In this document: positions 4,377 through 59,927 of the stretch, piece after piece
Layout: each line of letters begins with the position of its first letter
How positions within the stretch are numbered: position 1 is the first letter of the stretch
Assembly (NCBI GenBank): GCA_002104905.1
Contig: MCFE01000228.1
Span: forward strand, 58,069-122,068
DNA length: 64,000 nt
Direction of reading: 5' to 3'
From: Basidiobolus meristosporus CBS 931.73
Taxonomy: Eukaryota > Fungi > Basidiobolomycota
Made by a program: the position numbers and the translations under genes
The notes under the pieces: generated by a model
The model's database searches: none
Told to the model about the DNA's origin: nothing
The model's input: only the letters and a program-made list of their open reading frames with translations

Positions 4377-7300
4377 GTGTCGACTGTATTAACTATTAAT
4401 GATGTCTGCATGATTTTGCCTTTACTCCATATGATGTCCACATCTGATAAAATTACTCCGGTTTCAAAGATAGTGACTACGAAATGAGTGAATATTTCAT
4501 TCAGTCTTCTTTACTTTACATGAGAATTTAAATAGCCGATGGTTTCGCCGACAGCATATCATCCTAGCCAATCAAGAGTATAGCAGAATGGAACATATGA
4601 CATTCCAGTCCTTCAGACGTGTTAACTCTCTCACGAGGGCTCTAACCAATAGTGTTGGCTTGATTAATTCAGAATCGTAGCCCTGTAGGTAAATAGTGAT
4701 GGAACTTGAACTTGTTGGAGACTCGGGTTTCAATTACAAATGGTAAGCTGCTGTGTAAAGCTGGATGAAGTATCGACTCTGCCTTAGGCGTTTATTATTA
4801 ACATGGAGTTTATGGATTGAGACGGAAATGCTCCTGAATCAGGGATGAGCTTGCACATTACCAATACAGTCAGCAACATCAGCTCTCATTGCAGATTTAC
4901 AGCAATGTTCAGTCCGGATTTGGGGATGGGGGCTTCTTCTATCTTCACTCGAGTCTTGAGTCCTAACTGGACGACCTACACTTTGCCTAGACGCCACTCA
5001 TTCTCGTCAGGCCAGTAGAACCGGTTGATGACAGAGATCGGGGAGAGGTGATTCCTGATACCCTGGAGTCTACCAACAGCTATCCATCTCCTCTCGACGG
5101 GGCCGACTTTGCCAGTTTGTGGTTGAGCAAAGGAGCGGTTGAAATACCTTTGGTTGGGTTGAGATGGCTCCATGGTCCTAATGTGATCACTTCTTAGACT
5201 AATAAATGAGATAAAAGATTTATGAAAGATTCAACTGCGAATGAAATCATATCAATTACGATATAATCAACACTGATTCATCTTGACTTTTTTGGTATTT
5301 CCTGATCCTAATATCTTCGTTGCCAGTCTCGAAGGAGACAATATTCTCGCCACCTCCACGGAGATGCTGTCATGTAGAGACAACTGACGAGTGCCTCATA
5401 TGCGTTTGGGTGGCTGCTTCGCTCACAGCGTATGGGTGGTTTGTAGTCAGGCTAGTTTCGAAGCGCTGGGGGGGGGGTTTCTGGCTGTCAGGTATGCAGA
5501 CCACTGCAGATAACATCCACTGTCTACATTAGATCAATTGTATCGCTTGCAAGAAACATAGGCCGCTGGCATACGGTAACAGATTGCACATTGGGCATTA
5601 CCTGCGCCGAAATTTAGCTGCCTCAAATAAAACTGGTGGTGAGTAAAACTTGATTTATAATACGTTCGACAGCCTGCCAGCAACTTGTTGCTATTGCTCT
5701 AAATCATTTGTCTAGAACTGCTCTGTATAAGACCCCCCGCTGCATACTGAGAGTGAGAAATCAGGATATTGGAAACACAATCTCATGGAGTCCCAATCCC
5801 ACTGAATCCCAAGTATTGTCCATATCACGGCCACGTCAGAAAATCGGCCATAGAGGCCTTTGAAGTGCGCCATGGGAACATTGTTTCATCAGCTCTTCTC
5901 AAGCTAGGTGGAGAAATAATCACTACGATTCAGTCCACTCGCTCCCCTCCAAACAAATCGATCTATCTGTGAGACACCCTTGGAGGCCCTTTTCAACGAC
6001 ACCCTATTTTCGGCAGGCCGTGGCTTTATAAGCGGCGCTGGGCACCTCCTCTCCAGCAATGACCCAATTTCCCAAGCACACTATCCCCCCTACCATTTGA
6101 GCCTCTATAGATTGTTGTATACAGTTGTCGTCTTCTATACATGTTTGTGAATTATTGCTTCGTAGAGTCGTTATAACATAGCTCACATCAATTCGAAAAG
6201 TACCAGCCCAGCCCAACGCCCATACATCCCTATACATACGCCCATCCATTCCACTACACCAAGCATTCATGGCTTCCACGGTCAACCCTAAACGAACACT
6301 GACTCTCGTAGAAATCGGGGAGAACCATTGTTTCAAGCTCAAGAAACACTATCACATCAACGCCCCTGATGCATCCGCTGCCTTCACATACACACCTGTC
6401 AGCTTCAAGTCAGATCCCCCGGCTGCTGACGAGGAAAGAAATATAGAAAGAGTGCCTATTAAAATGGAACTAGATAGAAAAATACCTGACTATGTATTTT
6501 ATCGTAGAAATGCTATTGCCGGAGGAGCCCTCCCCATGCCCTCGATAGGCAAGAAGGGTATCAAGGCTGATGGCATTTGTTAATAGTTCTCTGCACATTC
6601 GTATCTTGTTCATAATCATTCTACCATTTGTGATGCGACAACGCGATATAAACTTTTGTTCAAACCGATGCTCTTGGCCAACGCAACAGCCATCATATCC
6701 CCCTCCTCATGAGATCACTCTAGGCCTGAGCAATTTCACATCTGTTGTTGATCTGGGACTGTGTTACATTAAGGCGAGCCTTATTGGAACCCGTGATGGA
6801 GATGGGAAGAAGTCACTCACCAAGCTTTCAATGGGCAATGAGACGCATCGCTTGAGCCCCAGATAAAGGATAAAAGCTGCGTTCCAACAATGAACTTGGC
6901 TCGAGTGGGGTCGATGATAGCATCTACTCGTCATTGGTATTGGGTTTATCCATGGCAATTGGTTGATCCCTGATGATTCGGTGCAATGTAGCGCCTTCGT
7001 CCATTCAAGACATAAGCAAGTTCGGTCAAATGTGGCCTGTTTGGAGACTCGCATCATACCAAGCCACTTGTATGCCGTTGATCTTGGGTGAAACGATTCA
7101 CACACCCGACTCGAGCACTGGACCTCTCAAGCCATCAGAAATATGTTCTAATGCACCAGTAGTGATGGGCGTGTGATCAAGCTTTCAGATGGGAATCTCA
7201 CCTCCACCTCCAAGTGAGCCCCACTACAGCATACGTCTATGACTCGACATACTGCGTGGAGACATACATAAACCAGTGATCACGCCTACTTCCCCATCAA

Positions 7301-7859: not shown

Positions 7860-9220
7860 TTAAGCCTGAGTCTCCGGGGCGACCGCCTTCTCTTTCACCG
7901 GATCTATGGGATGCTCAGTCAGTCATTTATGATGGCTTATGAATAGCAAGATGCGAAGTACCAAAGTAAGGGTGCTCCATAGCTTCCTTGGGTGTGAGCC
8001 TTTCTTGATGGTCATAACGGAGCAGTTTGTCCAAGAAGTCCAGAGCCGCAGGGGAGACGTACTTCTGATTCTCCGGGGTGACGAATTTGTTCCAGGGTTT
8101 ACGGGCATATCTGCCCAGAATGTCATTGTACTGATTGTCCAGACGAATCGAATACTTGTCCAAGTAGGCAAACAACTCATCAGTGCCAAGTACCTTGGCT
8201 ATCTTGACCAACTGATCGTAGTTGTCTTGACCATGGAAGAACGGATCCTTGCGGAAAATCATCCCAGCAAACATACATCCCAAACTCCACATGTCCAAGG
8301 AATAATCGTACTCTTGGAAGTCCACTAGGAGCTCAGGCCCCTTGAAGTATCTGGAGGCCACGCGAACGTTGTATTCGGTACCAGGATGATAAAATTCAGC
8401 AAGGCCCCAATCAATTAGACGAAGCTGTGGGCAGGTTAGTAGGGCACAAGTATGAATTGGCTTGCAGCATGAGCATACCTGGCGCTTTTCGTGGTCAATC
8501 ATGACATTGTGAGGCTTAACGTCGCGATGCATAATGCCCTTGGAGTGACAGAAATCTAAAGCCTGCAGGATTCAACTAGGTTGGTACTCGATTCCGGCTA
8601 AAGCGAAAATGAAGCTAAGGTACCTTCAGAAGTTCAAAGATGTAGAAACGAACATCGTAATCCGTAAACTTGGGATACAATATTTTGAAATCGATGTTGT
8701 TGACATGCTCGAATATCAAAGAGGGAGTTTTGCTCTGCAAGGCGGTTGAAGTCAGCGTTTGGGTTGAGGAGTGGTTAAGAAAGCAAGTTACACTCACTTG
8801 GGGATCTCTAACAACATCATACAGAGTAATCACATTGATTCCTCCGGCAAGATTTTGCAAGATTTTGATCTCACGCTTGATCTTCTTCTTTCTGACGGGC
8901 TTCAGAACCTTGATTACCACTTTGCGGTTATTGGTGATGTCCACACCTTCAAAAACCTCCGAGTATTTTCCACGGCCAACTTTACGAACAATCTCATAGC
9001 TGTCTTGGCCTCTAACAGATGCGGTCAAAGTTAGCATCGATCTCGCGCGAGTGTTATGTATCATAGCGGGCGTAAGAATCGTCCAGAAAACGCTCTGAAA
9101 GCCACGGAATAAAAGGAAAACTTACCCCCAGTTAACTTGCAGATTGTCATAGTCCCAATACTCTCTGGGTAAGGTTTGATTTACGTTGGCATACGATCTA
9201 GCTACGCTGCGAGACGTCAT
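7860..9220 (-). CDS. CKA1: Casein kinase II catalytic alpha subunit, 6 exons (9220-9126, 9011-8798, 8734-8624, 8562-8479, 8424-7962, 7903-7860)
   Basis: Spliced product [32 protein letters not shown]...GRGKYSEVF...[15 protein letters not shown]...HRDVKPHN...DWGLAEFY...ASRYFKGPE...[19 protein letters not shown]. All five introns are GT-AG, 54-114 nt. Confidence 0.97.
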
Positions 9221-35817: not shown

Positions 35818-37295
35818 CTAACTGATTACCCATGCATTGGGGCTGCTTAGCTTCTTAGTGCCATAGCCATAGGTGTCTCCATTTCCACATCTGTCCTGAG
35901 TATTTCCCAACTCTTCCCGGCTGTCCTCCATGTGCCAGCTCATCACATCCATGATGGACTTGAAGGTAATATTCTTGATGAGATTGGGATATGGTAGTAC
36001 CTGCAACTTGTCTTGTCTTCCTATCTCCCCACACAACTGCTCCATAGGAAAATCCCAAAAGGTGTAGCAAGGTCTAATATTCTCCATACACTGTGCAAAA
36101 TAGAGTAGAAAATGGATACAGTAGCAGCAGAGATCTAGGCATTTAGACTTATGTTTGTAGTATAGCCGCTCAAATCCTGTCACAAACTCCTTGCACAACT
36201 GCTGTACATGTGTCAAGTTGGCATTGGTGATCCGCTTCTGGATAAATACTCCCACATTGTCTAAATATGACTCCCAGTGCTTCCAATATACTCTAGGTAG
36301 GAATGGCTTCAGAATTCTACTTGGATAAATACATATCCAGTTCATCAAGCCCTTGCTGTTGTATTGGTGCAAATGTGTATGAACGTTGATTGGAGATTGT
36401 GAGAAGTATTTAGGGTAGCGGATACTTTGTAATATCTTGCCAATTCTTTCAAATTTCTCCAGTATCTCAATGGGCTCATTTAGCTTGAAATCCCCTATAT
36501 ACAACTTAGTCATAGGTACATGGATATTGTTGAAAAGCAAATGCATTGCTCCCAGTGGAAAGCTTTTGCTCCAACAGATTCCCTCTGTCTTAAGTATCTC
36601 TGGTTTCCAATTGATTTAATATTCTGGCCAATGGCTTTTAGCTTGCCAACTTGCTGCTGTTATATGCTGACTTCTATAGATTCTCCCTGTGGGAAGATGA
36701 TATTCCTGGGGTTGGTGTTTGGGTAATGATAATGTGTGTGAATTATGGAGTAAATCCCCTGGACCTCATACATTTGACTGCATTACTTTCAATTGTGCCC
36801 AGAAGAACCTGCTATCATGCTGATGGCTGGCGTATCTCCAATGCAGATTATAATATGTGCTGTTACATAATGGACATTTATTGTTATCCCATGGGAAAGC
36901 ATACAACATTCATCCAGCAATGGATACATGTAGCTATCCCAGTTGGATGGTGATTTAGGCTCAGATAATAGTGAAACTACCATTAGATTATTGAACTGAT
37001 ACCGTAAGAGGGGTGGCAGATTCAGATTGATGAGAGTCAGTGGCCTGCAGGATTTGCAGACAGAGCACTTATTTGATGAGAATCCATCAAGTGCTAAGGC
37101 AAAGGCATGGTCATACACACCCTCAAAGTAGCCCTTGCTACTTAACTGTTTGTAATTTTTGCCATCAAATACATTGGATACGTATGAGCCTGATTGATAC
37201 TGAGTGCAGTACTTTATAGCATTGCACTGTTTGTTGGACTGCATTAGCTTCCTCAGACAGGGTATTACCAAAATATATCCAGACCTATACACCAC
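35818..37295 (-). pseudogene. CMC/CACTA (EnSpm, tnp2-like) transposase, core and C-terminal parts
   Basis: VFDGKNY...LALDGF...LINLNLPPLLRY...YPLLDE...IGDTPA...GHN, then HFLLY...PCYTFWDFPMEQLCG, matching CACTA transposase motifs; frameshifted. Confidence 0.9.
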
Positions 37296-37689
37296 AACAA
37301 CGGTAGTATTATACAGAACTAGCTGTAGGCTGCCATACTGCTGTTATAATGCCATCCAAGCCTTGCTGAGAGGCCATTGAAATACTGTCAAATTTTTGTC
37401 ATATAAGGCAATTGGATGTCCCTGCCAGCTGGATCCATTCAAAATAGTTGTAGTGGGCAATAAGACCACACTAATGCCATGCAATTATTTTCACAGCACT
37501 AATTGCATCCCACTGGCTTTATCATTTGACTTTGTAGTAAAACCAACAAAATGCCATTGTGATCCTGTCACAAGATCATCAACAGGGTGCTGATTCCAAG
37601 CTGCTGGTAATATGACAGCCTCTAAATGGGGTCATGACAGCTGATCTTGATTGGATCCCCCTGCAGGGTCAAGTTATTTTTCATAGCAA

Positions 37690-38574
37690 TAAATATGGTA
37701 CTGGAGTGATCTGGAGCATCTAATATCTATATTTTGATGGTTATAGTGATTCAAATTGGGGTAGGGATCTTATGAACAGACACTATACCACTGGGTATGG
37801 ATTTCCTTATGCTGGTGCAGCTAGTACTTAGAATTGCAAGAGACAAACAACTGTGGCCCCATCTACAACTGAAGCTGAATATATGGCTGTTTGTCAAACC
37901 ACCAAGATGACTATATAGCAACAGAAATTATTCAAAGACTTGGGTTTTAGCTCAGTAGAACCAATATGTACTTGCAAGAATAATCAAAGTTATATTTCAT
38001 TGGCTAGAGATCCTACTAATCATGCCAGAACTAAGCATAGATACATAACATCACTTTGTGAGCAAAGCTGTAGCAAATAAATTAGTACAGTTAGTATACT
38101 GTCCAATTGACAAAGTTGTAGCAGATAAATTGACAAAATCAGCAGCCAGGCCACAATTTGAGAATCTCAGAAAGGATTCAGGATTGAGAAAATTTTTAGT
38201 AGAGGTGGTGTGCTGAAATATTGGACTATTTAGTCTCATTCAGCAGCTCAAAATTTACTCAACAGTTTTAGACTAATATTGGTTATTGCAGGATTAACTC
38301 CCAGCCCTATCTTTGCCACTTGCTCCAGATTTATGATCCTATGATTATTCCCCTATAGTAAAGATCAAATTAGCACTTTTACCAAACATTATATACCAAC
38401 CCTGAAACCACAACAGTATGCTCCTGAGTGTTGAAAAAATCTCCTTACTCAGTTCTAAAGTTGTATTACTTCTACAAAGGTATAATACTGAGTTTTTTCA
38501 TGAGTGAACAGCAGATCAACTATTATCACTATTTCTTGACATGTTCCTTATATCCATATCTCATCTTTGCAGCA
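37690..38574 (+). mobile_element. Copia RT/RNase H 3' remnant and 3' LTR (38211-38574), related to family E
   Basis: GYSDSNWG-like and STTEAEY-like decayed motifs; PPT AGAGGTGGTG; LTR resembles the reverse complement of the 48013-48381 LTR. Confidence 0.75.
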
Positions 38575-38699
38575 AGATTCACCTGTACTGCTAAGTTATG
38601 AACTGGTAAGCCCACCACAAGTCAGAGATGTGGATAATGCCACAGACAAAGAAGATAGCCCTCCTGGGAGTAAGATACCTAGCATTGGAGTTGAAAGAG

Positions 38700-39657
38700 A
38701 CAAAGAGACAAATATGTTAGTTATTGGAGCAAGGATACAACAGACCCAGCAAGTCACCTTGGGGAGCATCAGTGCATATTGTGAAAAAGAAGGATGGAGC
38801 ACCTAGGATGTGCATTGACTGTGGAGCCCCCAACTCAGTTACTGTGAAGTATAAGTACCCCCTACCTGGAATTGATGAGCTTTTGGACCTACACAATGTA
38901 CCAGCTATATCCAGCATGATTAACTTCATGTCAGGATAAAACCGGATCAGGGAGGAACCAGAAGAAATCCCTAAGACAGCATTCAGGATTAGATATGGAT
39001 ATTACAGGTACTTAATCATGAGTTTTGGCCTACCTATTCCTGTGCAACATTCATGACCTTAGTGCAAACAGTCATCTAGGAGTACTGAGAGAGGCTTATG
39101 GTACTCTACCTACACAACATATTGATATACATCAAGACAGAAGAGGAACACTTGGTACACAATGAAAAGGTCTCAAAGTGGCTAAGAGAGAACAAGCTGA
39201 ATGGCAGGCAAGCATAGTGTGAGTTCATAAAGGAGCATGTTGAATGCCTGGGACACAAAGTGACTTGTGCAGCAGTAGTCTTAGACTGCAAGAAGGTTGA
39301 AGTCATCAAAAATCTGAAGCAGCATATAAGCACTGAGATCATTCCTTGGAATAGTTTCCTATTATTAGAGATTTGTCGAGTCCTTTGCACAAATTGCAGT
39401 CCCTTGAGCTGATATTCTCAAGAAGGACAACACCTTGAAGTGGGAGATAGCCTGTGAGACTGCATTTCAGATGCTCAAGAATGAACTGCTAAGCTGCCAA
39501 GCTTAAATATCTTGGACTTTAGAAGAGAGTTTACTCTGTGCACAAATGCTTCAGACTATGCAATCATTGGAGTACTGAGCCAAGAACAGGAGGGAAAGGA
39601 CTACTTGGTTGCTTTTGAGTCCAAGAAATCAGACTCAGCTGAACAAAATTACTGTGC
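38700..39657 (+). mobile_element. Decayed Ty3/gypsy RT and RNase H fragment
   Basis: [25 protein letters not shown]...[11 protein letters not shown]; YLHNIL (YxDD remnant); TNASDYAIIGVLSQ...VAFES RNase H. Confidence 0.88.
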
Positions 39658-39873
39658 CTGAAGAGTGGGTATAGAGGAGAAAGAAGTTATTAGAAGAGGG
39701 TATATACGTAAAAGAGTTAAGTGTGATATGAAATTATAAATTCGGGTTAAAACTAATATCAAATATAAATTTGGTTTTTAATTTTGGTTTTTAAAAAATA
39801 ATTATAATCTTTTAAATTCAAACTCAAGTCGACAACTTAAGATTAATATTTACGTAAATACAACTATTATAAA

Positions 39874-39925
39874 ATTACTGCCACAAATTATTGCCAGATA
39901 TTATTGCCAGATATTATTGCCACAA
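39874..39925. repeat. Four tandem copies of a 13-bp unit ATTA(C/T)TGCCA(CAA/GAT)
   Basis: attactgccacaa, attattgccagat, attattgccagat, attattgccacaa, directly 3' of the island ORF stop codon. Confidence 0.9.
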
Positions 39926-39926
39926 A

Positions 39927-41048
39927 TTATTTATTTGCGTTTGTGTTATATAACCACATCCTATAACTCTCTACCGTTTGTTTATTTGGTAAATACACTA
40001 TCTTGTCACCAGAACTTCTCCAAAACTTTTCTTTTAATCCTAACTGTTTCCTAATGTTATTCATGTAACTAAGATGTTCCTTAAGCGGATTCCCTGGCTG
40101 TTCATCCAATATTGGAACCTTCCACAATGGCCTCGAAAAACATCTCTGAAATGTATCATCATCCCATTGTACAGCAACACAAATACCATCCTTGTTCACA
40201 TATTGTGCCTTAACTCTCTTTGTTCCCAACTCTACAGGATGATCAAGATCTTGCAATAAAAAAGCATCCTTGCCTGGAACTATTGTCGGTTTTAACATTA
40301 AAGATATTTTTACGTCTATTAGCGATGAATACAACTCGTCATCATTTGTAAACATCGTTTTTCCTTTTGACGATATTACAGGCTCATATGTTATTTTTGT
40401 TTCGTGATACAACTTAGTCTGATTCCTAAATATTATTATACCACGATTAAACTTCTGTTTCCAGAGATACTTACCGTCATTGGGTACATAAATGTTATAT
40501 CCTTTGTTTTTCGTAACATCCACTAAAATAATATCTATACCAAACGTTTCCTCAAAATACCTATAATAGTACTTACCGTCCAAATTCTTTTCGGAATTAT
40601 TAAACGTCTCCACTACCATATCAAAAGGAATGTTACATGTTTCCTGCTTTGTTACCTCTAACCCTTCTGTACTTAAACTCTTTCTTATAACATCTATCTG
40701 TTTGTTGAAATTCTTAAACAAAGTCGGATTTAAAGCATACAATATAGCTGCCAAAAAAGACGATGGACCTTGGTTGACTCCAACTCTAAAATAAGTATTC
40801 TTGATACATAAGTTTCCTATTAATGCACTCGGTAAAGGTCCCATTTTTTCTTCCTCCAAATGTCTTAACGACCCAATTATTTTTGGTTTGTTCTCCCCCT
40901 TTGCTTTTTCTTCATTGTTTTGCCCAAAATAATATTTATAAGTTTCGCTACCAGGACGATTCATATGATCTGTTGTATAACAAGTTTCCAAATGCAAAAA
41001 TTTATCTCTATTAGATAACCTGTTTTTCTTCAAACCAACAAAAAATTT
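39927..41048 (-). CDS. 5'-truncated ORF (~373 codons) resembling the C-terminal part of the NCLDV early transcription factor large subunit (VETF-L)
   Basis: The track start is TTG and the frame is open back to 41048. Motifs: VGLKKNRLSNRDKFLHLETCY, YFRVGVNQGPSSFLAAIL, TKQET, NLDGKYYYRYFEETFGIDIILV, QYVNKDG. No introns; AT-rich codons. Identity is recalled from motifs, not searched. Confidence 0.65.
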   Translation of the reverse strand, partial: KFFVGLKKNRLSNRDKFLHLETCYTTDHMNRPGSETYKYYFGQNNEEKAKGENKPKIIGSLRHLEEEKMGPLPSALIGNLCIKNTYFRVGVNQGPSSFLAAILYALNPTLFKNFNKQIDVIRKSLSTEGLEVTKQETCNIPFDMVVETFNNSEKNLDGKYYYRYFEETFGIDIILVDVTKNKGYNIYVPNDGKYLWKQKFNRGIIIFRNQTKLYHETKITYEPVISSKGKTMFTNDDELYSSLIDVKISLMLKPTIVPGKDAFLLQDLDHPVELGTKRVKAQYVNKDGICVAVQWDDDTFQRCFSRPLWKVPILDEQPGNPLKEHLSYMNNIRKQLGLKEKFWRSSGDKIVYLPNKQTVESYRMWLYNTNANK

Positions 41049-41052
41049 CTAG

Positions 41053-41990
41053 TTTATCCACTAGTTGGTCAGTTGAAAAGAGACATTTTCTGATGATCTT
41101 GGAAGGTCCCATCTATTGTGGCTCAGACTTGTTCCAAGTGTTGTTTCTCAGCAATACAAAGTTCCCAACTGTCAATGCTTCTGGTGATATAGTCTTGACA
41201 TATCCCTGCTTTATCTTTTCTGCAATTTAAGATACCTTGGCCTGTGCCCTTTGACATCTTTACTCCAGCTGCTGGTGTCTGCTTAGCTGACTGAGCTCAT
41301 CTTCTAAGGCATCAGTAAGCTTTAGTTCTGTGAGATCTCCTGGAATCCTTGGTTCATATTCATTCACTAAGTAAAATGGCAATTATTGGGTGGTGTTATG
41401 TACTCTAACTCTGCTTGCAAAAAGTGCTTGCACTGTATACTCATCCCATCTACTGACAGCACCATTTGTATACTTGGTCAACACCTTTCCAAATAATCTA
41501 TTAAACTGCTTGGTGACACCATTGATTCTAGGGTGAAATGCCAAGGTCTTCAAGTGTCTGATGAGCTGCATTTCTAGGTAAGCTTCCAATGTATTTGCCA
41601 TAAAGTTTGCTCCTCTATCAGTTAAAATCTCTACAGGTCATCCAGACCTCATAAGGATCTCATGGTAGATGAAACTTGCAACTTCTTGTTCACTGGCTAC
41701 ATGTACTGCTTTAGCAACTGTCCATTGAGTGGTATGGTCAATTGCTACTTAGATCCAACAGCTGCACTTCCTGGTGGCTGGCAGTCTTCCAATAAAGTCA
41801 ATTCCCCATCTTTCAAATGGTCTTACAAGCCCCAAGGGAAAGAGCTCAGAATTTCTCTGTGGTTGGCCTTGGTGAATCTGGCAATTTGGGGATGTTTTGA
41901 CTAGCTTTCCAGTGTCTTGCTTTACTCTGGGCCACCATGCTCTGGCTTTCACAAGGCCATAGGTTCCTTCAATTTCAGGATGTCCACATC
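41053..41990 (-). mobile_element. Inverted decayed copy of the gypsy family C integrase region
   Basis: RPFERWGIDFIGRLP and HPRINGVTKQFN on minus; mirrors 42005-42945. Confidence 0.88.
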
Positions 41991-43450
41991 TAAGCTACAC
42001 AAGGGATATGGACATCTTGGGATTGAAGGAACCTATAGCCTTGTGAAAGCCAGAGCATGGTGGCCCAGAATGAAACAAGATATTGAGAAGCTAGTGAAAC
42101 ATGCCCAAACTGCCAAATTAATCAAGGCCAGCCACAAAGAATTGCCAAACTCTTCCCTTTGGAGCCTGTAAGACCATTTGAGAGATGGGGAGTTGACTTT
42201 ATTGGAAGACTGCCAACCACCAAGAAATGCAACCATTGGATCATAGTAGTAAATGACCATGCCACTAAATGGCCAGTTGCTAAAGCTGTACCAATAGCCA
42301 GTGAACAAGAAGTTGCAAGTTTCATTTACCATGAGATCCTGATGAAGTTTGGATGCCCTGTGGAGATGTTATCTGATAGAGGAGCAAACTTTATGGTAAA
42401 GACATTAGAGGCTTACCTGGAAATGCAGCAGATCAGACACTTGAAAACCTTGGCATATCACCCCAGAACTAATGGAGTCACTGAATGCTTTAATGGATTA
42501 TTTGGAAAAATGCTAACCAAGTATGCAAATGGAGCTGCCAGTAGATGGGATGAGTATATAGATCAAGCACTTTTTGCCTGCAGAGTCAGAGTGCACAACA
42601 CTACCGGACAATCACCATTTTACTTAGTGTATGGATGTGAACCAAGGATTCCAGGAGATCTCACACAACCCAAACTTACAGATGCCTTAGAAGATGAGCT
42701 TAGTCCGCCCAGTAGACACCAGCAATTGGAACCAAGATGACAAGAGGCACAGGCCAAAGTATCTCCAAGTGCAGAAAAGATGAAGCAGAGATTTGATAAG
42801 ACTATAGCACCAGAAGCATTGGCAGTGGGGAACTTTGTATTGCTAAGAAACAACACTTGGAAGAAGTTTGAGCCGCAATGGACAGGACCATTCAAGATCA
42901 TCAGAGAATATCCATTTGCAACTTACCAACTAGTGGATAAGCAAGGGAATATCCAGGAATATTTAGTTCATAGAGACAGGCTCAAGCTTGCAAGACTTGC
43001 TACCAAAACTGAACCATCAAGATATTGGTATCACAAGAAAAGAGATACAGGAGAACCCTCTCAACTTTAGTGGGGGAGAATGTTATGATCTGCCGCTTGA
43101 ATGTTTGAGTTAGATCAGTTTTTAGGCAAATCAATTAAGTTATATGTTTAGGTTATTAGTATGTCAGTATTATCTATCATATCAATAACATTAGTCAGCA
43201 AATGAATCAGCAGATCCTTATCAGACAGAAATAGATATATTAAGGAGGATCTTATTGGATGATGATGATGCAATCAAATCAGTCATCAGCCACAACCTAC
43301 ATTAGAAAACACAATTAGTCAGCAATTGATCTGGCAAAATGTATATGAGGAGCTGCTGGAACCTCAATAAAGATCAATTTAAGTTTTAGTGAATACAATA
43401 CTAGCTAAACTCCCTATTCCTCTACAGCTCTTATACCAAGACTTGTAACA
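41991..43450 (+). mobile_element. 3' end of gypsy family C: integrase, PPT and 3' LTR (43081-43450)
   Basis: GHLGIEGTY...WWP...RPFERWGVDFIG...SDRGANF...HPRTNGVTE...KFEPQWTGPF; PPT GTGGGGGAGAA before TGTTATG. Confidence 0.92.
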
Positions 43451-44126: not shown

Positions 44127-47100
44127 TGTGGTAGGGTAAACATACCTCCCACAGACAAGTTTATTCATATAGTCATTATGATATACTTATCCATATTTTA
44201 TCTTATCAGTATTATCCCATTCTTCTTTTGCCCATATTATCAGTATTATCCCCATATGATGTTTACCCTGATTAGTTATTAGCATTAGTTATCCCAGATG
44301 TTATTCAGCTTTGTGATCAGTAGATGTATCTATATAAGGCAAGTACCCGCGTCAATACCCGTGACACATGACCTAGGTCTGTGTTACCATCTCTACCATT
44401 TCAATACCATATATGGTATTTCTATGTTGCACAGGTTTCAGACTACTGATTCCTGATTGGTTGAGAGTGCTGTGCCTTTTAGAACCTTCCAGGACATTCT
44501 TGGCATATTTTTAGCTCATAGTGATGTCATCAAGAATTCCACTGATACCTAGAATCTTCTAGAACCTTGTCATTAGTAATCACTTGGCAATCAGGAAAAG
44601 TATTTAAGGGAAAGCAATCCCTCATCAATAAATCATCCCTTCTATCAGTAACACTTCTACCTTATTGATTAGCAGCTGATCACTGCACCTGCCTTCAACA
44701 GTACATCTCAGACCTGCCATCAAGGAGCTTTTCAGGGTAGTGCACAAGACACACAGAGGCCTTTGGAGACACTTGGAGCACCTAGGAAGCTAGAGAAGCA
44801 GGAGCTTTTACCATAGTGACATATTGACAAAGACACCAGCAGTTTAGACACAGAGGTTATCGCACCCATCAGACACCTCACACACCTTGAGTTGTGTAGC
44901 TTCTCCCAGGAGTACCTCTACACCACCACATATTTGGCACCCAACGTGGGGGGTTTGACTGAACTGCCCCTAGAAGACTTAAGAAAGAACAAATTATCAA
45001 GACCATGGATCTACCTTTACCAGGAATGCAAGGAACCCCTTTCTTTGATGGAACCAAAGTTAAAGCTTTCATCAAGAGGTGGGAGCTTTTCTGCAGAGCC
45101 CACAAAATACCTGAGGCCATTATGGCTGAAGAGATGCCCCCCTACAGCACTGATGAGATCATGCTCTCTTTATATGAAAGAAATGATCTGCTGACAAATT
45201 GGACCCTCTTGAAGAGCTACTTGATTGATGAATATGGAGAGAGACAAGTTGACTACACACTTAAAGACTTGGAGAACTTTGCTTATAGCAAGTTTAAGCT
45301 GCTACCATTGAAAGAATACTTGAGTGGCCTTGAGCAAATTGGAGAGTCACTGAAAGCCCAAGGCATTATCACTGATCTGACTTTATCTGCCTATCTGCTC
45401 AGAGCACTACCAGAAGGCCTGGTGAGAAGGATTGAAAACAATCCTACTGTGAAAGCTATGAGTTCACTGCCTGCATTTCAGTTAGCCAAGCAGATTCTAC
45501 TTGCCCCTGAAGAAACCTCACCAATCAGAAAGCTTCTTTCAAGCCCAGAACAAATCCAAGATAGCCAAGACATACTTAATCCCAGCAATCAAAGCACTCA
45601 AATTCAGGAGCTGACACAGCAACTAGAAAAACTCTCTTTGCTACTTGCCAGCAAAGCATATGGTCAGAAGCCAGTAGAGAAAGAAGTCAAATATACATGC
45701 ATGTGGTGTGACTCTGCCAACCATTCCAAGAGAAATTGCCAAGAGCTTCAGTCATTACTATCCACAGGTGATGTCCTATATAGTCCTCAGGGATACATAG
45801 TCAGTAAGCATGGTGACAAATTATCCACAGCATTTGGACAAGGAGGAATGAGAGTTCACTACAAGCAAGTCACCTCTCATACAAGAAAGGTTCAACTCCA
45901 TGAAGAAGAAGATCCTGACTACTTTGATCCAGCTGAAGTTCTGAACTTTGACTATGAGGACCCCAGAGAGGCCCAAGATCATATAGCTTCAATTTATGCT
46001 TCAAAGAGACACCATCCTGAAAAAATGGCTAATCCAGGCCCAGCAACAAAAGTACCAAGATGTGAGCCAGAAGTTGTGATTGAGAAGAAAGCATCACCCC
46101 CATTAATTTTACAAGAGTCTGCCAAGGCCAACAACTACCACATGCAGCCTAGAGTCAAGCAAAAGGGTACCCCAGAGGCTCTGACAAGTCATATACTAGG
46201 AAGCAACATATCAATCAAGGTTGGAGAGCTACTCAGTGTATCACCATCTGTAAGAAAGACTATGGATGAGCATATCAGAATAAGAAAGCATCCAATTGAA
46301 GCAACTCAAGGCAACCAGGTCAGGACAGTTCAAGGAAGCCAAGATATCAGTAAGCTGCATCAAAGCCAGAAACACTACTACTCAGTGGCAACTGCAACAA
46401 CTACAGGAACTGTGCATAATCAAGAAATCCTATGTCATATAGACAGTGGATCTGAGATATGTGTGATGCCTTTGGAGGCTTGGAAACAACTACCATGCAA
46501 AGACCTATTGCCCATAGACACCAATATCAATTGGAGCATGAAGGATGCCAACTCAGGGCAATCAAAGCTTTTAGGAATTATTCACAGCTTCCCTCTCATC
46601 ATTGAAGGAATACCCCATGAGATCCCAGTATTCATTTGTGCAAAGGCTAACTTTGAATTACTTCTTGGAAGACCATGGGAAGTAAAAGCAAGAGCAACTG
46701 CAGTGAACTACCCAGATGGTTCAGCATGGTATACTATATACTCAGAGAGCCCAGGACTAACAGCAACCTTCTGTGGTGTGGACTCAAACAATATCCGATC
46801 AATGACATCATGTAGATTTCTATCTCAAGAAAGGACAGGTGGCTTCATTGAGGAAGACTGAGAGAGCACTTTGTTCTCCAAACTTACAGTGGTTAGCTAA
46901 AAAGTTCCCTGAAACTTTTTAGCTCAAGTGGGGGGTGGATGTGGTAGGGTAAACATACCTCCCACAGACAAGTTTATTCATATAGTCATTATGATATACT
47001 TATCCATATTTTATCTTATCAGTATTATCCCATTCTTCTTTTGCCCATATTATCAGTATTATCCCCATATGATGTTTACCCTGATTAGTTATTAGCATTA

Positions 47101-47743
47101 GTTATCCCAGATGTTATTCAGCTTTGTGATCAGTAGATGTATCTATATAAGGCAAGTACCCGCGTCAATACCCGTGACACATGACCTAGGTCTGTGTTAC
47201 CATCTCTACCATTTCAATACCATATATGGTATTTCTATGTTGCACAGGTTTCAGACTACTGATTCCTGATTGGTTGAGAGTGCTGTGCCTTTTAGAACCT
47301 TCCAGGACATTCTTGGCATATTTTTAGCTCATAGTGATGTCATCAAGAATTCCACTGATACCTAGAATCTTCTAGAACCTTGTCATTAGTAATCACTTGG
47401 CAATCAGGAAAAGTATTTAAGGGAAAGCAATCCCTCATCAATAAATCATCCCTTCTATCAGTAACACTTCTACCTTATTGATTAGCAGCTGATCACTGCA
47501 CCTGCCTTCAACAGTACATCTCAGACCTGCCATCAAGGAGCTTTTCAGGGTAGTGCACAAGACACACAGAGGCCTTTGGAGACACTTGGAGCACCTAGGA
47601 AGCTAGAGAAGCAGGAGCTTTTACCATAGTGACATATTGACAAAGACACCAGCAGTTTAGACACAGAGGTTATCGCACCCATCAGACACCTCACACACCT
47701 TGAGTTGTGTAGCTTCTCCCAGGAGTACCTCTACACCACCACA
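44127..47743 (+). mobile_element. Young non-autonomous gypsy-type LTR element encoding only Gag-protease, 3617 bp
   Basis: 804-bp LTRs at 44127-44930 and 46940-47743 with no difference seen; 4-bp TSD ACGC; PBS TGGCACCCAACGTGGGG at 44935-44951; PPT AAGTGGGGGGTGGA. Confidence 0.96.
45005..46861 (+). CDS. Intact 618-aa Gag-aspartic protease polyprotein
   Basis: TPFFDG-type gag N-terminus, CMWCDSANHSKRNC zinc knuckle (CX2CX4HX4C), IDSGSE protease active site with LLLGRPW; stop codon lies about 65 bp before the PPT. Confidence 0.93.
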   Translation: MDLPLPGMQGTPFFDGTKVKAFIKRWELFCRAHKIPEAIMAEEMPPYSTDEIMLSLYERNDLLTNWTLLKSYLIDEYGERQVDYTLKDLENFAYSKFKLLPLKEYLSGLEQIGESLKAQGIITDLTLSAYLLRALPEGLVRRIENNPTVKAMSSLPAFQLAKQILLAPEETSPIRKLLSSPEQIQDSQDILNPSNQSTQIQELTQQLEKLSLLLASKAYGQKPVEKEVKYTCMWCDSANHSKRNCQELQSLLSTGDVLYSPQGYIVSKHGDKLSTAFGQGGMRVHYKQVTSHTRKVQLHEEEDPDYFDPAEVLNFDYEDPREAQDHIASIYASKRHHPEKMANPGPATKVPRCEPEVVIEKKASPPLILQESAKANNYHMQPRVKQKGTPEALTSHILGSNISIKVGELLSVSPSVRKTMDEHIRIRKHPIEATQGNQVRTVQGSQDISKLHQSQKHYYSVATATTTGTVHNQEILCHIDSGSEICVMPLEAWKQLPCKDLLPIDTNINWSMKDANSGQSKLLGIIHSFPLIIEGIPHEIPVFICAKANFELLLGRPWEVKARATAVNYPDGSAWYTIYSESPGLTATFCGVDSNNIRSMTSCRFLSQERTGGFIEED

Positions 47744-55429: not shown

Positions 55430-56537
55430 TACTGAGTGTGGTACTACATAGCTTTGCAATATTTGTTGGACTGCATCAGCTTCCTCTGATTGGGTATGAC
55501 TGGAATGTATTCAGAGTGTGAAGGATGTTTTCCCTCAATGGTGGTGGATTCCTGACAATTTGGACACATTGCAATGGTAGCATTTTTGGATGTGAATGCC
55601 ATGAAACTGTTAACACATGCTGTTATCAGGACAGTCTCTAGATTATATGTTGCCAGCCACATGACAGTTGTCCACTTGTACCATGTACATAGTAAGTTGC
55701 ATCCCGGTATGATTTTGGCAAGAGGTAGTAATAAATCCTCAAGGCCCCCATTACTGGTATTAGTGGAAATATGCCACTTCTCTAACCACAACATTACATC
55801 ATTCACCAGTAGATGGATTACTGGGCTCACTTGGCTCCATAAAGTAACCTTGGCATTTGTTTCAATGGGTATTGTCTCATTGCATTTAGGGATTTGACCA
55901 GGCTCATACATGGTACTGTTGTTGGGGGAGATGAGCTCAAAATCCATCAGTGAACCTTCTTTGTCAGAGCTATCACTTGGTGTGCCATATTCAGAAGGCT
56001 GAGGTGAGCCTAAAGGTGTCACAAACTCACCTGACTCAGTTTGTGCAAGGTGACAAAGATGGCCAGGTGCCAATATAGAAGTATCAACTGGCTGGCAAGA
56101 TATTGTTGGTACAGTAGTGACCAATGAATGGTAAAGCATGCCTTGTGTGGCAAAACACTGGCTGTGATCCTTGTAATACTTCCTACACTGTCTCCATGCT
56201 TCATGGCTGAGAGGCTTGCTACAATATCTACATGGCCTTTTTTCTCTTCTCTTATGGCATTGAGTCAAGGTAGTCTTGTCCATGGAGCAAACAGTTTGAC
56301 CTTCAACAACCTAATGCTATTATATCACTTTTTGGTAGGTACTCATGTGAACTTAAGAGAGTCTTGTATAATGTAAGATTCAATAATGACCCACCATAGT
56401 GAGCAATATAAATAAAGTTGTGGCACCACATACACACGTATATGTAACACTATTTCCCCTTTGGTTTGACTCACTTATATATATATGCCACCAAAAAATA
56501 AAGCAATGTTGTCTAGTTCTCAACTAAACCCCACCAC

Positions 56538-57614
56538 TGATGGTTTAGTGGGGTCATAGTGACACCCACTGACAGATGTGCTCATTCCCATATTTTCTAC
56601 TTCCCTTTATCTCTACTACACTTATTTTAGTTTTATTCCATTTGTCTTACCTGATCAGTACTATTTCATAAGCCAGTTGACTATCACATCTGCTTACCTT
56701 ATTGCATAAGTTATCCCTCACTTTATGTAAGATTACTAGCTGTAAGTGCTTCTATATTAAGCAAGTACCTGCACCAGTACCTGTGACACATGATCAACCT
56801 GTGTCACCATTCCTACCATTTTTATACCATGTATGGTATCCCTATGTTGCACAGGTTTCATAATGCTGATTCCTGATTGGTTGGATGTTATGTGCCTCTT
56901 AGAACCTTCAAGCACATACTTGGAATACTCTTAGCTCATTCTGATGTCATTAAGATTTCTATTGATCTCCAGAACCTTCTGGAACACCATGATTAGTAAT
57001 CACTTACCCAGTGAGAAAAGTGTATAAGGGAGGCAATGCATCAACAGTAAATCATCATCCCTTTTATCAATATACCAACTTGTTGATTAGTGTGATCACT
57101 GCTACCTGCTGCTACCTGAACTTCCAACCCCAGGCCACAGGACACTTCCAGGAAACCACAATAACAGCCAACTGACCTTAGAGGCACTACTTATGAGGAA
57201 TACTCAGAGTAGGTATCTTTTATTATATTTGATTCTTTCCCAAGCTTGTTCTTTTACAGGCAAAGATTCTTTTCTGTCTTTGTAACTATTGACCACAGCT
57301 GCATTCTTATCAAGTCCCTGCTGGTGGAGTTTACAGTTGTTTTGACTTTGGAAGCTTTAGTACATTATCATCTCAAAGGACACTGAGCCCAGCACATACT
57401 TTTGTTAAGTTGCCAACTAAGTTGGGGATTGTAGCTCAATAGTTTTCTCTTGACAGGCTTGTGGCTTTACTCCCCATCACATTAGATTAGAGACAGAACC
57501 CAAGTATTCCTAGCAAGCTTTTGCCAGAGGTTATTGCACCCAGTGAGCACCCCTCACACAAAACACTTGAGAAGTGTTGGACATATCTCTCCCTTGGACC
57601 TATACACCACCACA
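56538..57614 (+). mobile_element. Solo LTR-like sequence of ~1.07 kb related to the Gag-protease element LTR, inserted in CACTA ORF2
   Basis: Shares GCAAGTACC...GTGACACATG, ATGTTGCACAGGTTTCA...CCTGATTGG and the terminal ...TACACCACCACA; no clean TSD; left edge approximate. Confidence 0.7.
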
Positions 57615-59927
57615 ACAGCAACAGAAGAATAGTTGGACAACAGCTTGCTTTGACATTCAGTGCAACAAGCCCTGTGGACAGTGTGCCCATTGAAGGTTAT
57701 AATGCAGACTCCTCAGGCTCTCAGTCAAGTAGGCAATTGAGAACCTCTGTGGAGCCACAAGCTGACTCTTATGCTTGGGCAGATGAGAATGTAGCAAATG
57801 CAGTACCCTCAGTTAAAGATCTGCAAGTGGTCATGATAACATCCCCACCACCCATATTAGCAAGTATGTTGTCAGCTCATACCAAAGCATCAATGAAGCA
57901 ATTAGGTGCTGTGGCTGATAGGATCAATGCAATGGGCCAGGGAAATCAGGAAATAGTCCAGAAACAGGATGAGCAGATAATGTGTGTAGAGCAATCAATA
58001 TCCCAGGTAGAGAAAGCAGTAACTTTGCTGCAAAGAAGGAACTCAGGTAGCTCAATGACACAGTCAAGAATTGAGCCATTTCTGAATGCAACAGCTGAGA
58101 AACACCATACAGTCTTTGAAGCACAACCACAGTGCCCAAAGATAAAGCTTACAGAAAAACCTATTACAGCTTGGGAGGGAGACAATGTGGTGCTTATATT
58201 AAAGCCTAAAAATCAAAAGACATTGAAGATCTGTGAAGCCATTAAGTGCAATAATGAAGAGTGGGCTAATATACAAGAGGCTGTCAGAAGTCTAGTATGC
58301 CATCACCTTAAGGCTGGCATACCATGGGACCATCAAGAACTCAAGGCCAAGCAGAATGCACTTGACTTGTTCCATGAGCATTATACTGGATTCAAGCAGG
58401 CAAATGGATTTTGGGCCAGCATTGGTATGCTAAGAAAGTATCCTAAGAATAGTAGAAACTATCAAAGGCAGAAGAACAAGGGTGCCATGGCTAAAAACCA
58501 CTGACTTCCTCAAGAGCCCATTACAAGCAGGGCCAAAAGCTCCAGACAAGCAACAAAGAGATATTGGGTAGCTGGAAGAGTGCCAATAGGGACAAGCAGG
58601 CAGACATGGATGCACCAGCACAACATCTCTCAAGGAAAAAGCATAGTACCACTCAAGAAGCACCCAGTCAAAGTAGCTGTGAAGGACCTGGCAGTGACAA
58701 AAACTAGCTGCTTTTACAGGAGCCTGTCACAACTATGGTTGGGAGCTCAAAACAAGCAGAAAAGAAACGTCAGGTTGCCAGAAGAGTGCCAGAAAGGGAC
58801 AAGCAGGCCAAAAAAGATGTGTCAGAGCAAAGTTTATCCAGGAAAAATGTAGTTCTTTACAAGAAGCACTCAGATAAAGTAGCAGTGAAAGACCTAGCAG
58901 TGATAAAGGAAAAGGGAAAGGGAAAAATGTCTACCCAAGCCTGAGACAGGGAGGCATGCAAAAAAAACTGCAGTTCTTGCCAATTAACGTTGCAAGCCAA
59001 GAACAGTCTGAATCCCATCATAGCCAAGAAGAAATACCAACAAGAAAACAGCTGTTTTCACCAGAGTTGGAAGTGCAGCCAGTTGAGCTACACTCCAGCA
59101 AGGTAGATGAGTTTGCAGAAAAAGGCAATTTGTCTACCACAGCCTCCATTGTTGACAGAGTGGAGATCCCACTGACAGAAAAGGCCACAATGTCAAGAGC
59201 TCAAAAGACTATCACAATGCCTTCAGTGGAGTTTTGGAACATTAATAGGCACACCAAGAGGTTGCAGCACTTCTTCAAGAGCAGTGCTCATGAAAACACA
59301 CTGGGATATTGCAAGGATTTATTGCAAAGACTGGCAGATGAAAAGCTAGACCTTGCAGTGCCGGTTGAAGACCAGGATGTGTGGGAACCAGTGAATAAAC
59401 AGTGGCATTAAGCTGTTGGGTTCCCACCAAAGTCATTGAACCAGAGCATTACCACAGAAATACCTATTGAGTGGTGGATTTTAGTGGAGTTACTTGTTGA
59501 GTGTGGGGTTGGGCTTAATGTTAGTGTAGTGTATAGTGACTTGTATAGGTTAATACAATTGGCAATTGAGGTACAACTAAAGTTTCAATGGATATAAATC
59601 AAATTGTATGCATGCAAAGTAAGAGAAACAGTTGAGTTAGGAAGTAAGGAGTGTGAAAAAGTGGCAATAGCCAATCAATTCACACAAACATAGGAGGCAA
59701 TAGATTGTCTGGGATCAGAAAGTGAGCAAATTGGCAGGGAACCAATCAAAAGTCACTTATCCATTGTTGTCATGGAAAATTTTGACCAAGTTTTTTGTGA
59801 AATCTGGGGTGCAATTATTTTTAACAGTCTCTGGCCGGTGCCCTGACAAGATCAATACCTCTTAGTCATGGGACTTTAACTTTGTGATGGCCTGTTGATG
59901 GGATCATCTCAATAATTTCCCATAGGG

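Follow-up and report, generated by a model that had tools for sequence, protein, structure and literature searches.

The minus-strand frame at 39927..41048 is best explained as a dead fragment of a giant-virus VETF-L-like gene, left by a past viral integration into the fungus Basidiobolus meristosporus CBS 931.73; we put the probability of this reading at about 0.8. Positions are those of the window, the 64-kb stretch of DNA analysed here. The feature is a 5′-truncated gene of apparent Nucleocytoviricota origin, reduced to roughly its C-terminal half (373 codons and the stop codon), and it is embedded in fungal DNA: it lies antisense inside the pol gene of a Gypsy element, in a 122-kb scaffold (MCFE01000228.1) of assembly GCA_002104905.1.

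A preliminary description of this DNA had reported a stop-free frame of about 373 codons, free of transposon or fungal motifs, among otherwise broken transposon frames. All of this holds. The frame is read from 41048 to 39930, with its stop codon at 39927-39929; since the local base composition predicts a stop about every 15 codons, the probability of 373 codons without one is about 1e-11. It is the longest open frame within about 4 kb on either side, and the flanking frames (Gypsy reverse transcriptase, RNase H, and integrase) are disrupted. The only break in the gene piece itself is the loss of the N-terminal ~360 codons, the native start codon with them; it has no internal stops and no frameshifts. 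The deposited gene model, ORX93663.1, is identical to the frame except at its predicted splice sites: it starts at an internal Met, and the splicing is predicted within continuous reading frame. No other gene model lies in the transposon debris for 10 kb on either side.

The one Pfam match of significance in the fragment is the last part of DUF5757 (PF19061), at 40929..41048 on the minus strand (residues 1-40, profile positions 59-96 of 96). The match proper covers residues 2-40 and the last 38 profile positions, with an E-value of 4.8e-7 and a score above the gathering threshold; the first 58 positions are missing. In a search to E ≤ 10 the only other match was a non-significant, chance one to DUF5633 (E 1.2). 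Every full-length relative has a complete DUF5757 in mid-protein by Pfam; that is the only domain they match, and the poxvirus VETF-L model is not among their hits.

A search with the fragment (phmmer) gives 232 relatives at E ≤ 1e-3, named “hypothetical protein” by their depositors or not named at all; no paper in the literature searched uses the term DUF5757. The best relative, P0003, is 44% identical (E 7e-89), the fragment aligning to its residues 360-713. The closest relatives, at 44% and 41% identity, come from sequencing runs ERR14048323 and ERR13998537. In the other direction, a tblastn search of the window places P0003 residues 359-712 at 41048-39948 in one in-frame HSP. Among the matched relatives two forms can be distinguished: a short one of 620-850 aa, to whose C-terminal half the fragment corresponds, and one of ~1200 aa, where it corresponds to the middle.

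The relatives are found in gene-dense, AT-rich contigs that carry genes for Rpb1, Rpb2, Rpb5, PolB, D5, TFIIS, topoisomerase II, PCNA, and SF2 helicases. Contig L001 has Rpb1 pieces, Rpb2, PolB, and a SNF2 helicase; L002 has Rpb5 and an SF2 helicase; L005 (124 kb) has Rpb1, the VETF-L-like gene, Rpb2, D5, and TFIIS; and L006 (170 kb) has TopoII, PCNA, and KilA-N. A D6-type SF2 helicase partner (the SF2 helicase encoded on these contigs is about 900 aa long) and viral RNA-polymerase subunits occur on L001, L002, L004, and L005. Each full-length relative examined comes from a gene-dense, AT-rich contig that lacks introns and carries NCLDV core genes; this bears out the Nucleocytoviricota origin proposed in the preliminary description from the letters of the window. 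The fungal homologues found, from two Basidiobolus species and Linnemannia, are either fragments or, as in Linnemannia elongata, adjacent to viral-type PolB and SF2 helicase genes.

The motif residues picked out beforehand in the fragment (G5, L6, N9, N13, C23, Y24, R88, G90, S97, F98, Q135, E136, Q282, and G288) fall in the most conserved alignment columns. In the alignments built here all 14, from G5 to G288, are invariant or at least 90% conserved. The fragment had also been said to have ETC where a PCC motif is usual, and its residues 21-23 are indeed E, T, and C; the long relatives have P in 46 of 50, C in 45 of 50, and C in 50 of 50 sequences at these positions.

Identification of the family as VETF-L-like comes from structure prediction for the closest full-length relative. 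The top BFVD matches of the P0003 model (pLDDT 80) are proteins of lymphocystis, pitho-, marseille-, orpheo-, and iridoviruses called “early transcription factor large subunit-like,” although these names are depositors' annotations rather than experimental results. Foldseek E-values against these named proteins run from 1e-34 to 1e-20 over ~700-900 aligned columns, with TM-scores on the query of at most 0.50. The same search finds the vaccinia ETF 82 kDa subunit (E 2e-6) and African swine fever virus (ASFV) G1340L (E 3e-6), and the model also matches chain 7amv_K of the poxvirus pre-initiation complex at E 1.9e-4 over 776 columns. The N-terminal domain of P0003 matches TATA-binding proteins (TBPs) at about 1e-4, with TM-scores on the target up to 0.52. 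The fragment's own model reaches the poxvirus VETF-l chain at an E-value of only 0.08.

Sequence comparisons do not extend this far. PDB searches with the fragment, P0003, and P0038 gave chance matches only, so that the poxvirus link is a structural one, and the family profiles A1 and A4, run against the PDB, found no VETF match and did not reach a solved VETF-l. A profile comparison with VETF-L had been suggested as a check on the original assignment: Pfam and PDB sequence profiles miss poxvirus VETF-l, while structure matches the named VETF-L-like proteins. A two-step link, sequence and then predicted structure, thus supports the frame as an incomplete member, by descent, of the VETF-L-like family. 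The earlier identification as a VETF-L homologue stands by way of the P0003 model. Its placement in the C-terminal third does not: in the 620-850-aa form the fragment makes up the C-terminal half, and in the ~1200-aa form it matches the middle.

The viral proteins most similar in fold are the VETF-L-like proteins of Pithovirus, Orpheovirus, Marseilleviridae, and Iridoviridae/Ascoviridae (W5S6Q4, A0A6F8X2U6, A0A2I2L618, Q91FM9), which match along the whole of P0003. They share with the window lineage the DUF5757 core and invariant residues G5, C23, Q135, E222, and G288 (window numbering). They are longer, at ~1100-1350 aa including a long additional C-terminal region, where the window's lineage has 620-850 aa; they have P-C-C for E-T-C; and they conserve C101, H209, and C221, which are A101, N209, and Y221 in the window. 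The window copy also lacks their N-terminal half. Vaccinia VETF-l (A7, the 82-kDa protein, 7AMV chain K) resembles the family in the 776-column alignment and the TBP-matching N-terminal domain of P0003, and in that the relatives' contigs encode the expected SF2 helicase partner type and RNA-polymerase subunits, but it has no detectable sequence similarity to the window lineage.

VETF-l serves the early pre-initiation complex as a TBP-like factor, and vaccinia is the only virus for which it is known to bind promoters and recruit the viral polymerase (PMC12917281). For the window lineage such a role is suggested by fold and gene neighbourhood: in the virus, the protein would pair with a D6-type SF2 helicase subunit, its N-terminal TBP-like domain would bind early promoters, and it would bridge these to the virus's own RNA polymerase. 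The TBP-like domain is present in full-length P0003 and absent from the window copy, whose start corresponds to P0003 residue ~359. With neither this domain nor a native start codon, and with no partner or polymerase genes nearby, the window copy is presumably unable to serve as a transcription factor.

The fragment and its flanks differ in composition and history. Immediately 3′ of the gene is an AT-rich tail at 39690..39926 (unstranded; lower bound ±40 nt), of 19-23% GC and with 13-nt tandem repeats, which is probably viral intergenic DNA. The captured piece is then about 1.36 kb in all, the C-terminal gene half plus ~240 bp of AT-rich 3′ flank. GC content is ~33% in the open frame and ~20% in the tail; the window as a whole has ~40%, and viral contig L001 ~30%; the composition of frame and tail is viral. 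Beyond the tail, at 37689..39689 on the plus strand, is a Gypsy pol segment homologous to other Gypsy copies in the window, with several stops and at least one frameshift. It has a weak RVT_1 match and an RNase H match that ends in mid-domain (RT_RNaseH_2, E 2.8e-12, profile positions 19-73 of 100). On the other side, at 41049..43067 (also unstranded), is a Gypsy integrase region folded as a palindrome, with matches to Integrase_H2C2, rve, and MLVIN_C in frames broken several times. The palindrome itself (41054-42940, 1.9 kb) is 84% self-complementary about a centre at ~41997, and its plus-strand arm runs to the integrase C-terminus. The junction is sharp: the fragment begins where the palindrome ends, and identity drops to 0.3 just outside the arm. 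Illegitimate recombination is the likely way in which the piece came to lie antisense in a single Gypsy pol, with RNase H on one side and integrase on the other, next to an integrase segment duplicated in inverted orientation.

Elsewhere the window consists of Copia, Gypsy, DDE, and tnp2 debris and one kinase gene. A Pfam search of its 87 open segments found transposon families, the kinase, and DUF5757, with no PolB; tblastn searches of the 64 kb found neither the missing N-terminal half nor, with the genes of four viral or EVE contigs as queries, any other viral gene. By tblastn and Pfam, a D6-type SF2 helicase partner and RNA-polymerase subunits are likewise absent from it. The kinase gene (7930-9121, minus strand) was considered as a possible second viral gene and rejected: it has no detectable similarity to the kinases beside the gene for P0004, and it looks like a host gene, with 45.5% GC and an intron-sized gap.

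The model of the fragment itself (pLDDT 88, pTM 0.79) folds confidently alone, and its best PDB matches are to OTU domains (best E 1.6e-4, probability 1.0, TM-scores of 0.54-0.57 on the target). Residues ~69-255 (40284..40844, minus strand), bounds taken from the secondary structure of the predicted model, form an alpha/beta module whose fold is that of OTU deubiquitinases (e.g., PDB 3C0R and 4BOZ), dozens of independent OTU entries being matched. The remainder, residues ~277-373 (39930..40220, minus strand), is a C-terminal three-stranded sheet with two long helices, and includes the invariant Q282 and G288. OTU cysteine proteases are expected to have a catalytic Cys and His, and the window lineage has neither. 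At the head of the first helix is Ser, not Cys, in 27 of 41 and 49 of 50 alignment rows; by alignment column shares, the short-class relatives have no C or H column at 70% conservation; and the Pfam scan of the fragment gave no OTU signal. With no Cys at the helix head, no conserved His, and no Pfam signal, OTU catalysis by the module appears unlikely. A literature search pairing VETF with OTU gave only a coincidental match.

The reading as a dead fragment is challenged by B. ranarum. The independent assembly of this sister species has an 81%-identical copy, also an open frame with a gene model called. Over 242 codons dN/dS between the two is 0.10, with no indels or stops; differences fall 32/18/87 by codon position, and there is no indel in 728 nt. 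If the two copies are orthologous, this points to selection in the host rather than to a dead fragment, and the viral piece might then have been exapted, its OTU-like module and C-terminal domain being expressed under purifying selection for a role in the host that has nothing to do with viral transcription. The confident fold of the isolated fragment would fit, as would the age of the locus: palindrome divergence is ~0.09 substitutions per site per arm, and if the piece were as old as that, the chance of its frame surviving neutral decay without a stop is only ~2-3%. The same dN/dS is however expected if two related viruses, having diverged under viral selection, integrated independently, and the 3′ junctions differ: the B. 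ranarum tail continues for at least 500 bp (24-29% GC, with tandem repeats), where that of the window gives way after ~240 bp to RNase H. The B. ranarum downstream flank, in a contig of 1235 bp, has no similarity to the window, so the 3′ junction is not common to both. A position antisense within Gypsy pol, a gene model that must start at an internal Met and splice inside a continuous frame for want of a native start, and replacement of all three of the conserved C, H, and C of the long relatives also speak against a working host gene, and we consider exaptation unlikely. Quite unlikely, in our estimate, is the fuller proposal that purifying selection has kept the piece, as a silent OTU-like module and a small C-terminal domain, from a time before the divergence of B. 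meristosporus and B. ranarum, together with its side claim that VETF-L of the pitho-, marseille-, and iridovirus side has a previously unremarked OTU-derived module, in some cases fused to a UCH deubiquitinase domain. If true, the former would mean that a fungus has exapted part of a giant-virus transcription factor, and the latter would be a hint of ubiquitin-related ancestry, or of a second activity, in VETF-L. Under the preferred reading, a dead viral fragment, the most likely reason that the frame is still open is that the surrounding debris is older than the piece.

Two further explanations dispense with a viral integration altogether. The gene might be a fast-evolving cellular or transposon-borne one that giant viruses acquired, the Basidiobolus copy being native; homologues do occur in two Basidiobolus species and Linnemannia, the OTU-like fold is common in eukaryotes, and the close relatives include no experimentally characterised member. 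This was already disfavoured and is very improbable, given the NCLDV setting of the full-length relatives examined, the fragmentary state or viral-type neighbours of the fungal copies, the lack of a transposon Pfam domain in the frame, and structure matches that are to viral proteins over their whole length. Alternatively, viral or environmental DNA might have been mis-joined into a fungal scaffold during assembly, as an isolated 1.36 kb of foreign composition with two non-canonical junctions could suggest. The piece sits, though, in a 122-kb scaffold between parts of one Gypsy family that recurs in the window, and the B. ranarum copy comes from a separate assembly; contamination or chimerism is thus hardly credible.

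Integration of giant-virus DNA in this fungus has precedent. NCLDV insertions in B. meristosporus, attributed to “fundsalphaviruses” close to Pithovirus, were reported in 2020 from PolB (Gong, Zhang & Han; PMC7017919). Their gene set (PolB, D5, a D6/D11-like helicase, Rpb2, Rpb5, and a split Rpb1) is that of the relatives' contigs, and they too have Pithovirus affinity and retrotransposons beside the insertions (PMC7017919). The undescribed fungus-infecting lineage suggested in the preliminary description is therefore probably a mistaken idea: the donor was most likely a virus of this Pithovirus-related group, judging from the gene neighbourhoods and the Linnemannia elongata copy. The 2020 study screened with PolB and listed six shared genes, VETF-L not among them (PMC7017919). 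In contrast to its elements, the locus described here consists of 1.36 kb by itself, PolB being absent from the whole 64 kb, and it is tied to the group by inference rather than by a tree. The Mycodnaviridae are also giant viruses of early-diverging fungi, but have Algavirales/Imitervirales affinity and were found through capsid genes in zoosporic fungi (PMC13533422); that paper does not mention Basidiobolus or VETF, and the fragment's relatives are on the pitho-, marseille-, and iridovirus side.

The current picture of fungal giant-virus fossils is refined by this locus rather than changed. It adds a core transcription gene to an inventory that, for non-zoosporic fungi, has so far been mainly PolB and a few neighbours, and it illustrates one route by which viral DNA can persist, in this case as a small remnant lodged in a rearranged retrotransposon. 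For the family, the analysis defines a compact VETF-L form of 620-850 aa, encoded between Rpb1 and Rpb2 in environmental virus contigs, and flags an OTU-like module that merits structural attention. Basidiobolus is a gut-associated fungus that can cause human disease, and the fragment adds independent evidence of its infection, past or continuing, by Pithovirus-related viruses.

The minus-strand frame at 39927–41048 has 373 stop-free codons, running from 41048 to 39930 with the stop codon at 39929–39927. Local composition predicts about 0.065 stops per codon, giving a chance probability of about 1e-11 for such a run; the open frames around it are short and overlap one another. The 64-kb window has 87 stop-free segments of 95 codons or more; screened against Pfam, they matched Copia and Gypsy retrotransposon families, DDE and tnp2 transposases, and one protein kinase, with DUF5757 matched by this frame alone. 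The preliminary description's long open frame amid transposon sequence is thus borne out. Part of the frame is covered by a deposited gene model of Basidiobolus meristosporus CBS 931.73, on the 122-kb scaffold MCFE01000228.1 (ORX93663.1, K493DRAFT_302551, “hypothetical protein”), which has no other called gene within ±10 kb. This model begins at an internal methionine and splices away pieces of the uninterrupted frame; it resembles an ab initio prediction within a desert of transposon sequence.

DUF5757 is the only Pfam match to the frame (residues 2–40, E 4.8e-7), and the presence of just its final 38 of 96 positions was a first sign of a C-terminal remnant. Searched exhaustively with phmmer, 1.84 billion representative sequences yielded 232 relatives at E ≤ 1e-3, in two size classes, both with a complete DUF5757 in mid-protein. 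In the short class (620–850 aa) the frame corresponds to the C-terminal half; the best matches are P0003 (718 aa, 44% identity, E 7e-89, over its residues 360–713) and P0004 (851 aa, 41% identity). In the long class (~1150–1300 aa) it corresponds to the middle, roughly positions 500–750.

The genome neighborhoods of these relatives are those of Nucleocytoviricota. P0003 is on a 19.8-kb contig (L001; ~30% GC, gene-packed on both strands) with two Rpb1 pieces, Rpb2, a family-B DNA polymerase (PolB), and an SNF2-type helicase; P0005 adjoins Rpb5 and a 928-aa SF2 helicase; and P0218, on a 124-kb metagenome contig (L005), lies between Rpb1 and Rpb2 genes, with D5 primase-helicase, TFIIS, and dUTPase nearby. 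A long-class member on a 170-kb contig adjoins topoisomerase II, PCNA, and Bro-N/KilA-N genes, and a copy in Linnemannia elongata AG-77 (OAQ22264.1) shares a 16-kb scaffold with an SF2 helicase and a PolB fragment. The repeated closeness to polymerase subunit genes fits a role in transcription. The order Rpb1, VETF-L-like gene, Rpb2 is common to two independent virus contigs, both with short-class members (L001, 1989–11119; L005, 8001–15018), and looks like a conserved transcription-gene cluster; in L001, Rpb1 is split into separate genes.

Sequence searches with the fragment, its relatives, or family profiles reached no solved structure, and the depositors' names for the relatives are uninformative. 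P0003 was compared by fold, using an AlphaFold2 model built with 38 relatives (mean pLDDT 79.6). Its best BFVD matches (E 1e-34 to 1e-20, over ~700–900 columns) are “early transcription factor large subunit-like” or “VETF-like” proteins of Lymphocystis disease virus 2, Pithovirus sibericum, Orpheovirus, Marseillevirus, and Tunisvirus, along with iridovirus proteins 295L and 016R. Mimivirus-group “early transcription factor large subunit” proteins match more weakly, as do the vaccinia 82-kDa ETF subunit (2e-6) and ASFV G1340L (3e-6). In the PDB, the N-terminal part of the model resembles TATA-binding proteins (about 1e-4), and the whole chain aligns with 7AMV chain K (708 residues), from a poxvirus pre-initiation complex (1.9e-4, 776 columns). 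VETF-l is a TBP-like factor which, with Rap94, makes up the TBP/TFIIB pair of the early pre-initiation complex (PMC12917281). The matches of the P0003 model to named viral proteins, TBPs, and 7AMV chain K support a VETF-L-like family, as the preliminary description had proposed from motif order, with the step from this family to poxviruses based on predicted fold and depositors' names rather than sequence.

The residues flagged in that description coincide with the family's most conserved alignment columns; the P, C, and C of the long class (46, 45, and 50 of 50 sequences) are indeed E, T, and C in the window. A model of the fragment itself (42 sequences, pLDDT 88, pTM 0.79) has the DUF5757 tail at residues 1–40, a short disordered linker, an alpha/beta module at residues ~69–255 (40284–40844, minus strand), a second disordered loop, and a three-stranded sheet with two long helices at residues ~277–373. 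Taken alone in Foldseek, this model scores only E 0.08 against 7amv_K; OTU deubiquitinase domains come first, in dozens (best E 1.6e-4, TM on the target up to 0.57), and the alpha/beta module resembles them in predicted fold. The OTU Cys/His catalytic pair is absent from the module. The first helix is headed by Ser, then Phe, with Ser in 27 of 41 rows for the short class and 49 of 50 with the long class, and the short-class alignment has no conserved His. The long class keeps C101 (37/50), H209 (37/50), and C221 (42/50), positions occupied in the window by A, N, and Y; among the long-class conserved residues S97, C101, H209, C221, and E222, the window retains only S97 and E222. A literature search found no connection between VETF-L and OTU proteins; on the predicted fold, it is conceivable that VETF-L proteins hold an OTU-derived module that has gone unremarked. 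Three long-class VETF-L-like proteins (P0206, P0207, and P0213; 1336–1577 aa) also have a PF00443 domain (ubiquitin C-terminal hydrolase); in them, a protein that already carries an OTU-like module is fused to a genuine deubiquitinase.

The fragment lies antisense within a Gypsy pol gene, between its RNase H and integrase portions. On the plus strand, pol runs through reverse transcriptase into an RNase H that is cut off mid-domain at ~39.66 kb, followed by an AT-rich tail (~39690–39926, 19–23% GC, with 13-nt tandem repeats), the viral frame, and an inverted integrase copy; pol resumes with integrase at ~42.0–43.07 kb. The inverted and forward integrase copies form a 1.9-kb palindrome (41054–42940, center ~41997, 84% self-complementary), whose arms differ by 86 transitions and 48 transversions and whose similarity drops to random exactly at 41048/41049, the start of the viral frame. 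This palindrome, directly abutting the viral piece, looks like a product of fold-back repair. Both junctions of the piece are with internal pol sequence, not LTR ends, which speaks for the piece having been joined to pol by illegitimate recombination or break repair, and against a transposon having inserted into a viral gene. The only break in the viral gene is its missing ~360 N-terminal codons, and internal stops and frameshifts are absent; the surrounding pol has several stops and at least one frameshift in addition to the insertion. No other genes of the relatives' contigs were detectable in the 64-kb window.

Elsewhere in the window, a protein-kinase gene at 7930–9121 (minus strand; split into two open segments by a gap the size of an intron, 45.5% GC) is the only match neither transposon nor viral, and has no detectable similarity to the kinases adjoining the P0004 gene on its contig. 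Four ORFs of 240–405 aa without Pfam matches (3174–4388, 35821–36615, and 55447–56310, minus strand; 57491–58501, plus strand) resemble none of the genes on the viral contigs compared, and are probably transposon gag-like or orphan sequences. An LTR element at 44127–47239, with two 100% identical 300-nt direct repeats 2813 nt apart, is very young; it contains an intact 618-aa ORF (45005–46861) with just a weak DUF4100 match.

An open frame in such a place might have been retained by the host as a truncated protein. With the palindrome arms as a clock (Jukes-Cantor distance 0.177, ~0.09 per arm), the frame stays stop-free in just ~2–3% of neutral simulations, so that the piece is either younger than the palindrome or constrained. 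Youth is favored, because the frame and its tail still keep a viral-type composition distinct from their surroundings (the P0003 contig is ~30% GC), because transposon activity nearby is very recent (the identical LTR pair), and because the fragment lacks everything required for the viral role.

Over 728 nt the frame aligns gap-free, at 81% identity, with a Basidiobolus ranarum contig (JASJQH010012768.1, 1235 bp); the two copies have 32, 18, and 87 differences at the three codon positions (dS 1.04, dN 0.108, dN/dS 0.10). This divergence was built up under strong purifying selection, the pattern that independent integrations of two related viruses would give; only orthology of the two copies would make it a sign of selection in the host. 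The B. ranarum copy continues into at least 500 bp of tandem repeats (24–29% GC) without Gypsy sequence, so the downstream junction, the side that this contig covers before stopping short of the upstream one, is not shared with the window. Host retention is improbable, and a young viral piece is the preferred reading. AT-rich tandem repeats form the 3′ flank of both copies (window, 39766–39931; B. ranarum, 1008–1235), with unrelated sequences and units of 13 nt and 57/104 nt respectively; they may be viral intergenic repeat arrays.

The suggestion of an undescribed viral lineage is deflated by earlier work. Gong, Zhang and Han (2020; PMC7017919), screening 1,006 fungal genomes with PolB, described “fundsalphavirus” insertions related to Pithovirus in 14 species; B. 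meristosporus and Mortierella (Linnemannia) elongata are among these. The insertions often had retrotransposons near them, and had shared neighbors (D5, a D6/D11-like helicase, a methyltransferase, Rpb2, Rpb5, and a split Rpb1) that are the gene set on the contigs of the frame's relatives. The Mycodnaviridae (PMC13533422) are a separate lineage, in zoosporic fungi, whose description mentions neither B. meristosporus nor VETF-L. VETF-L is missing from the genes listed for the fundsalphavirus elements. The locus may be new, and the frame adds one more core gene to a class of giant-virus fossils in fungi that had been reported before.
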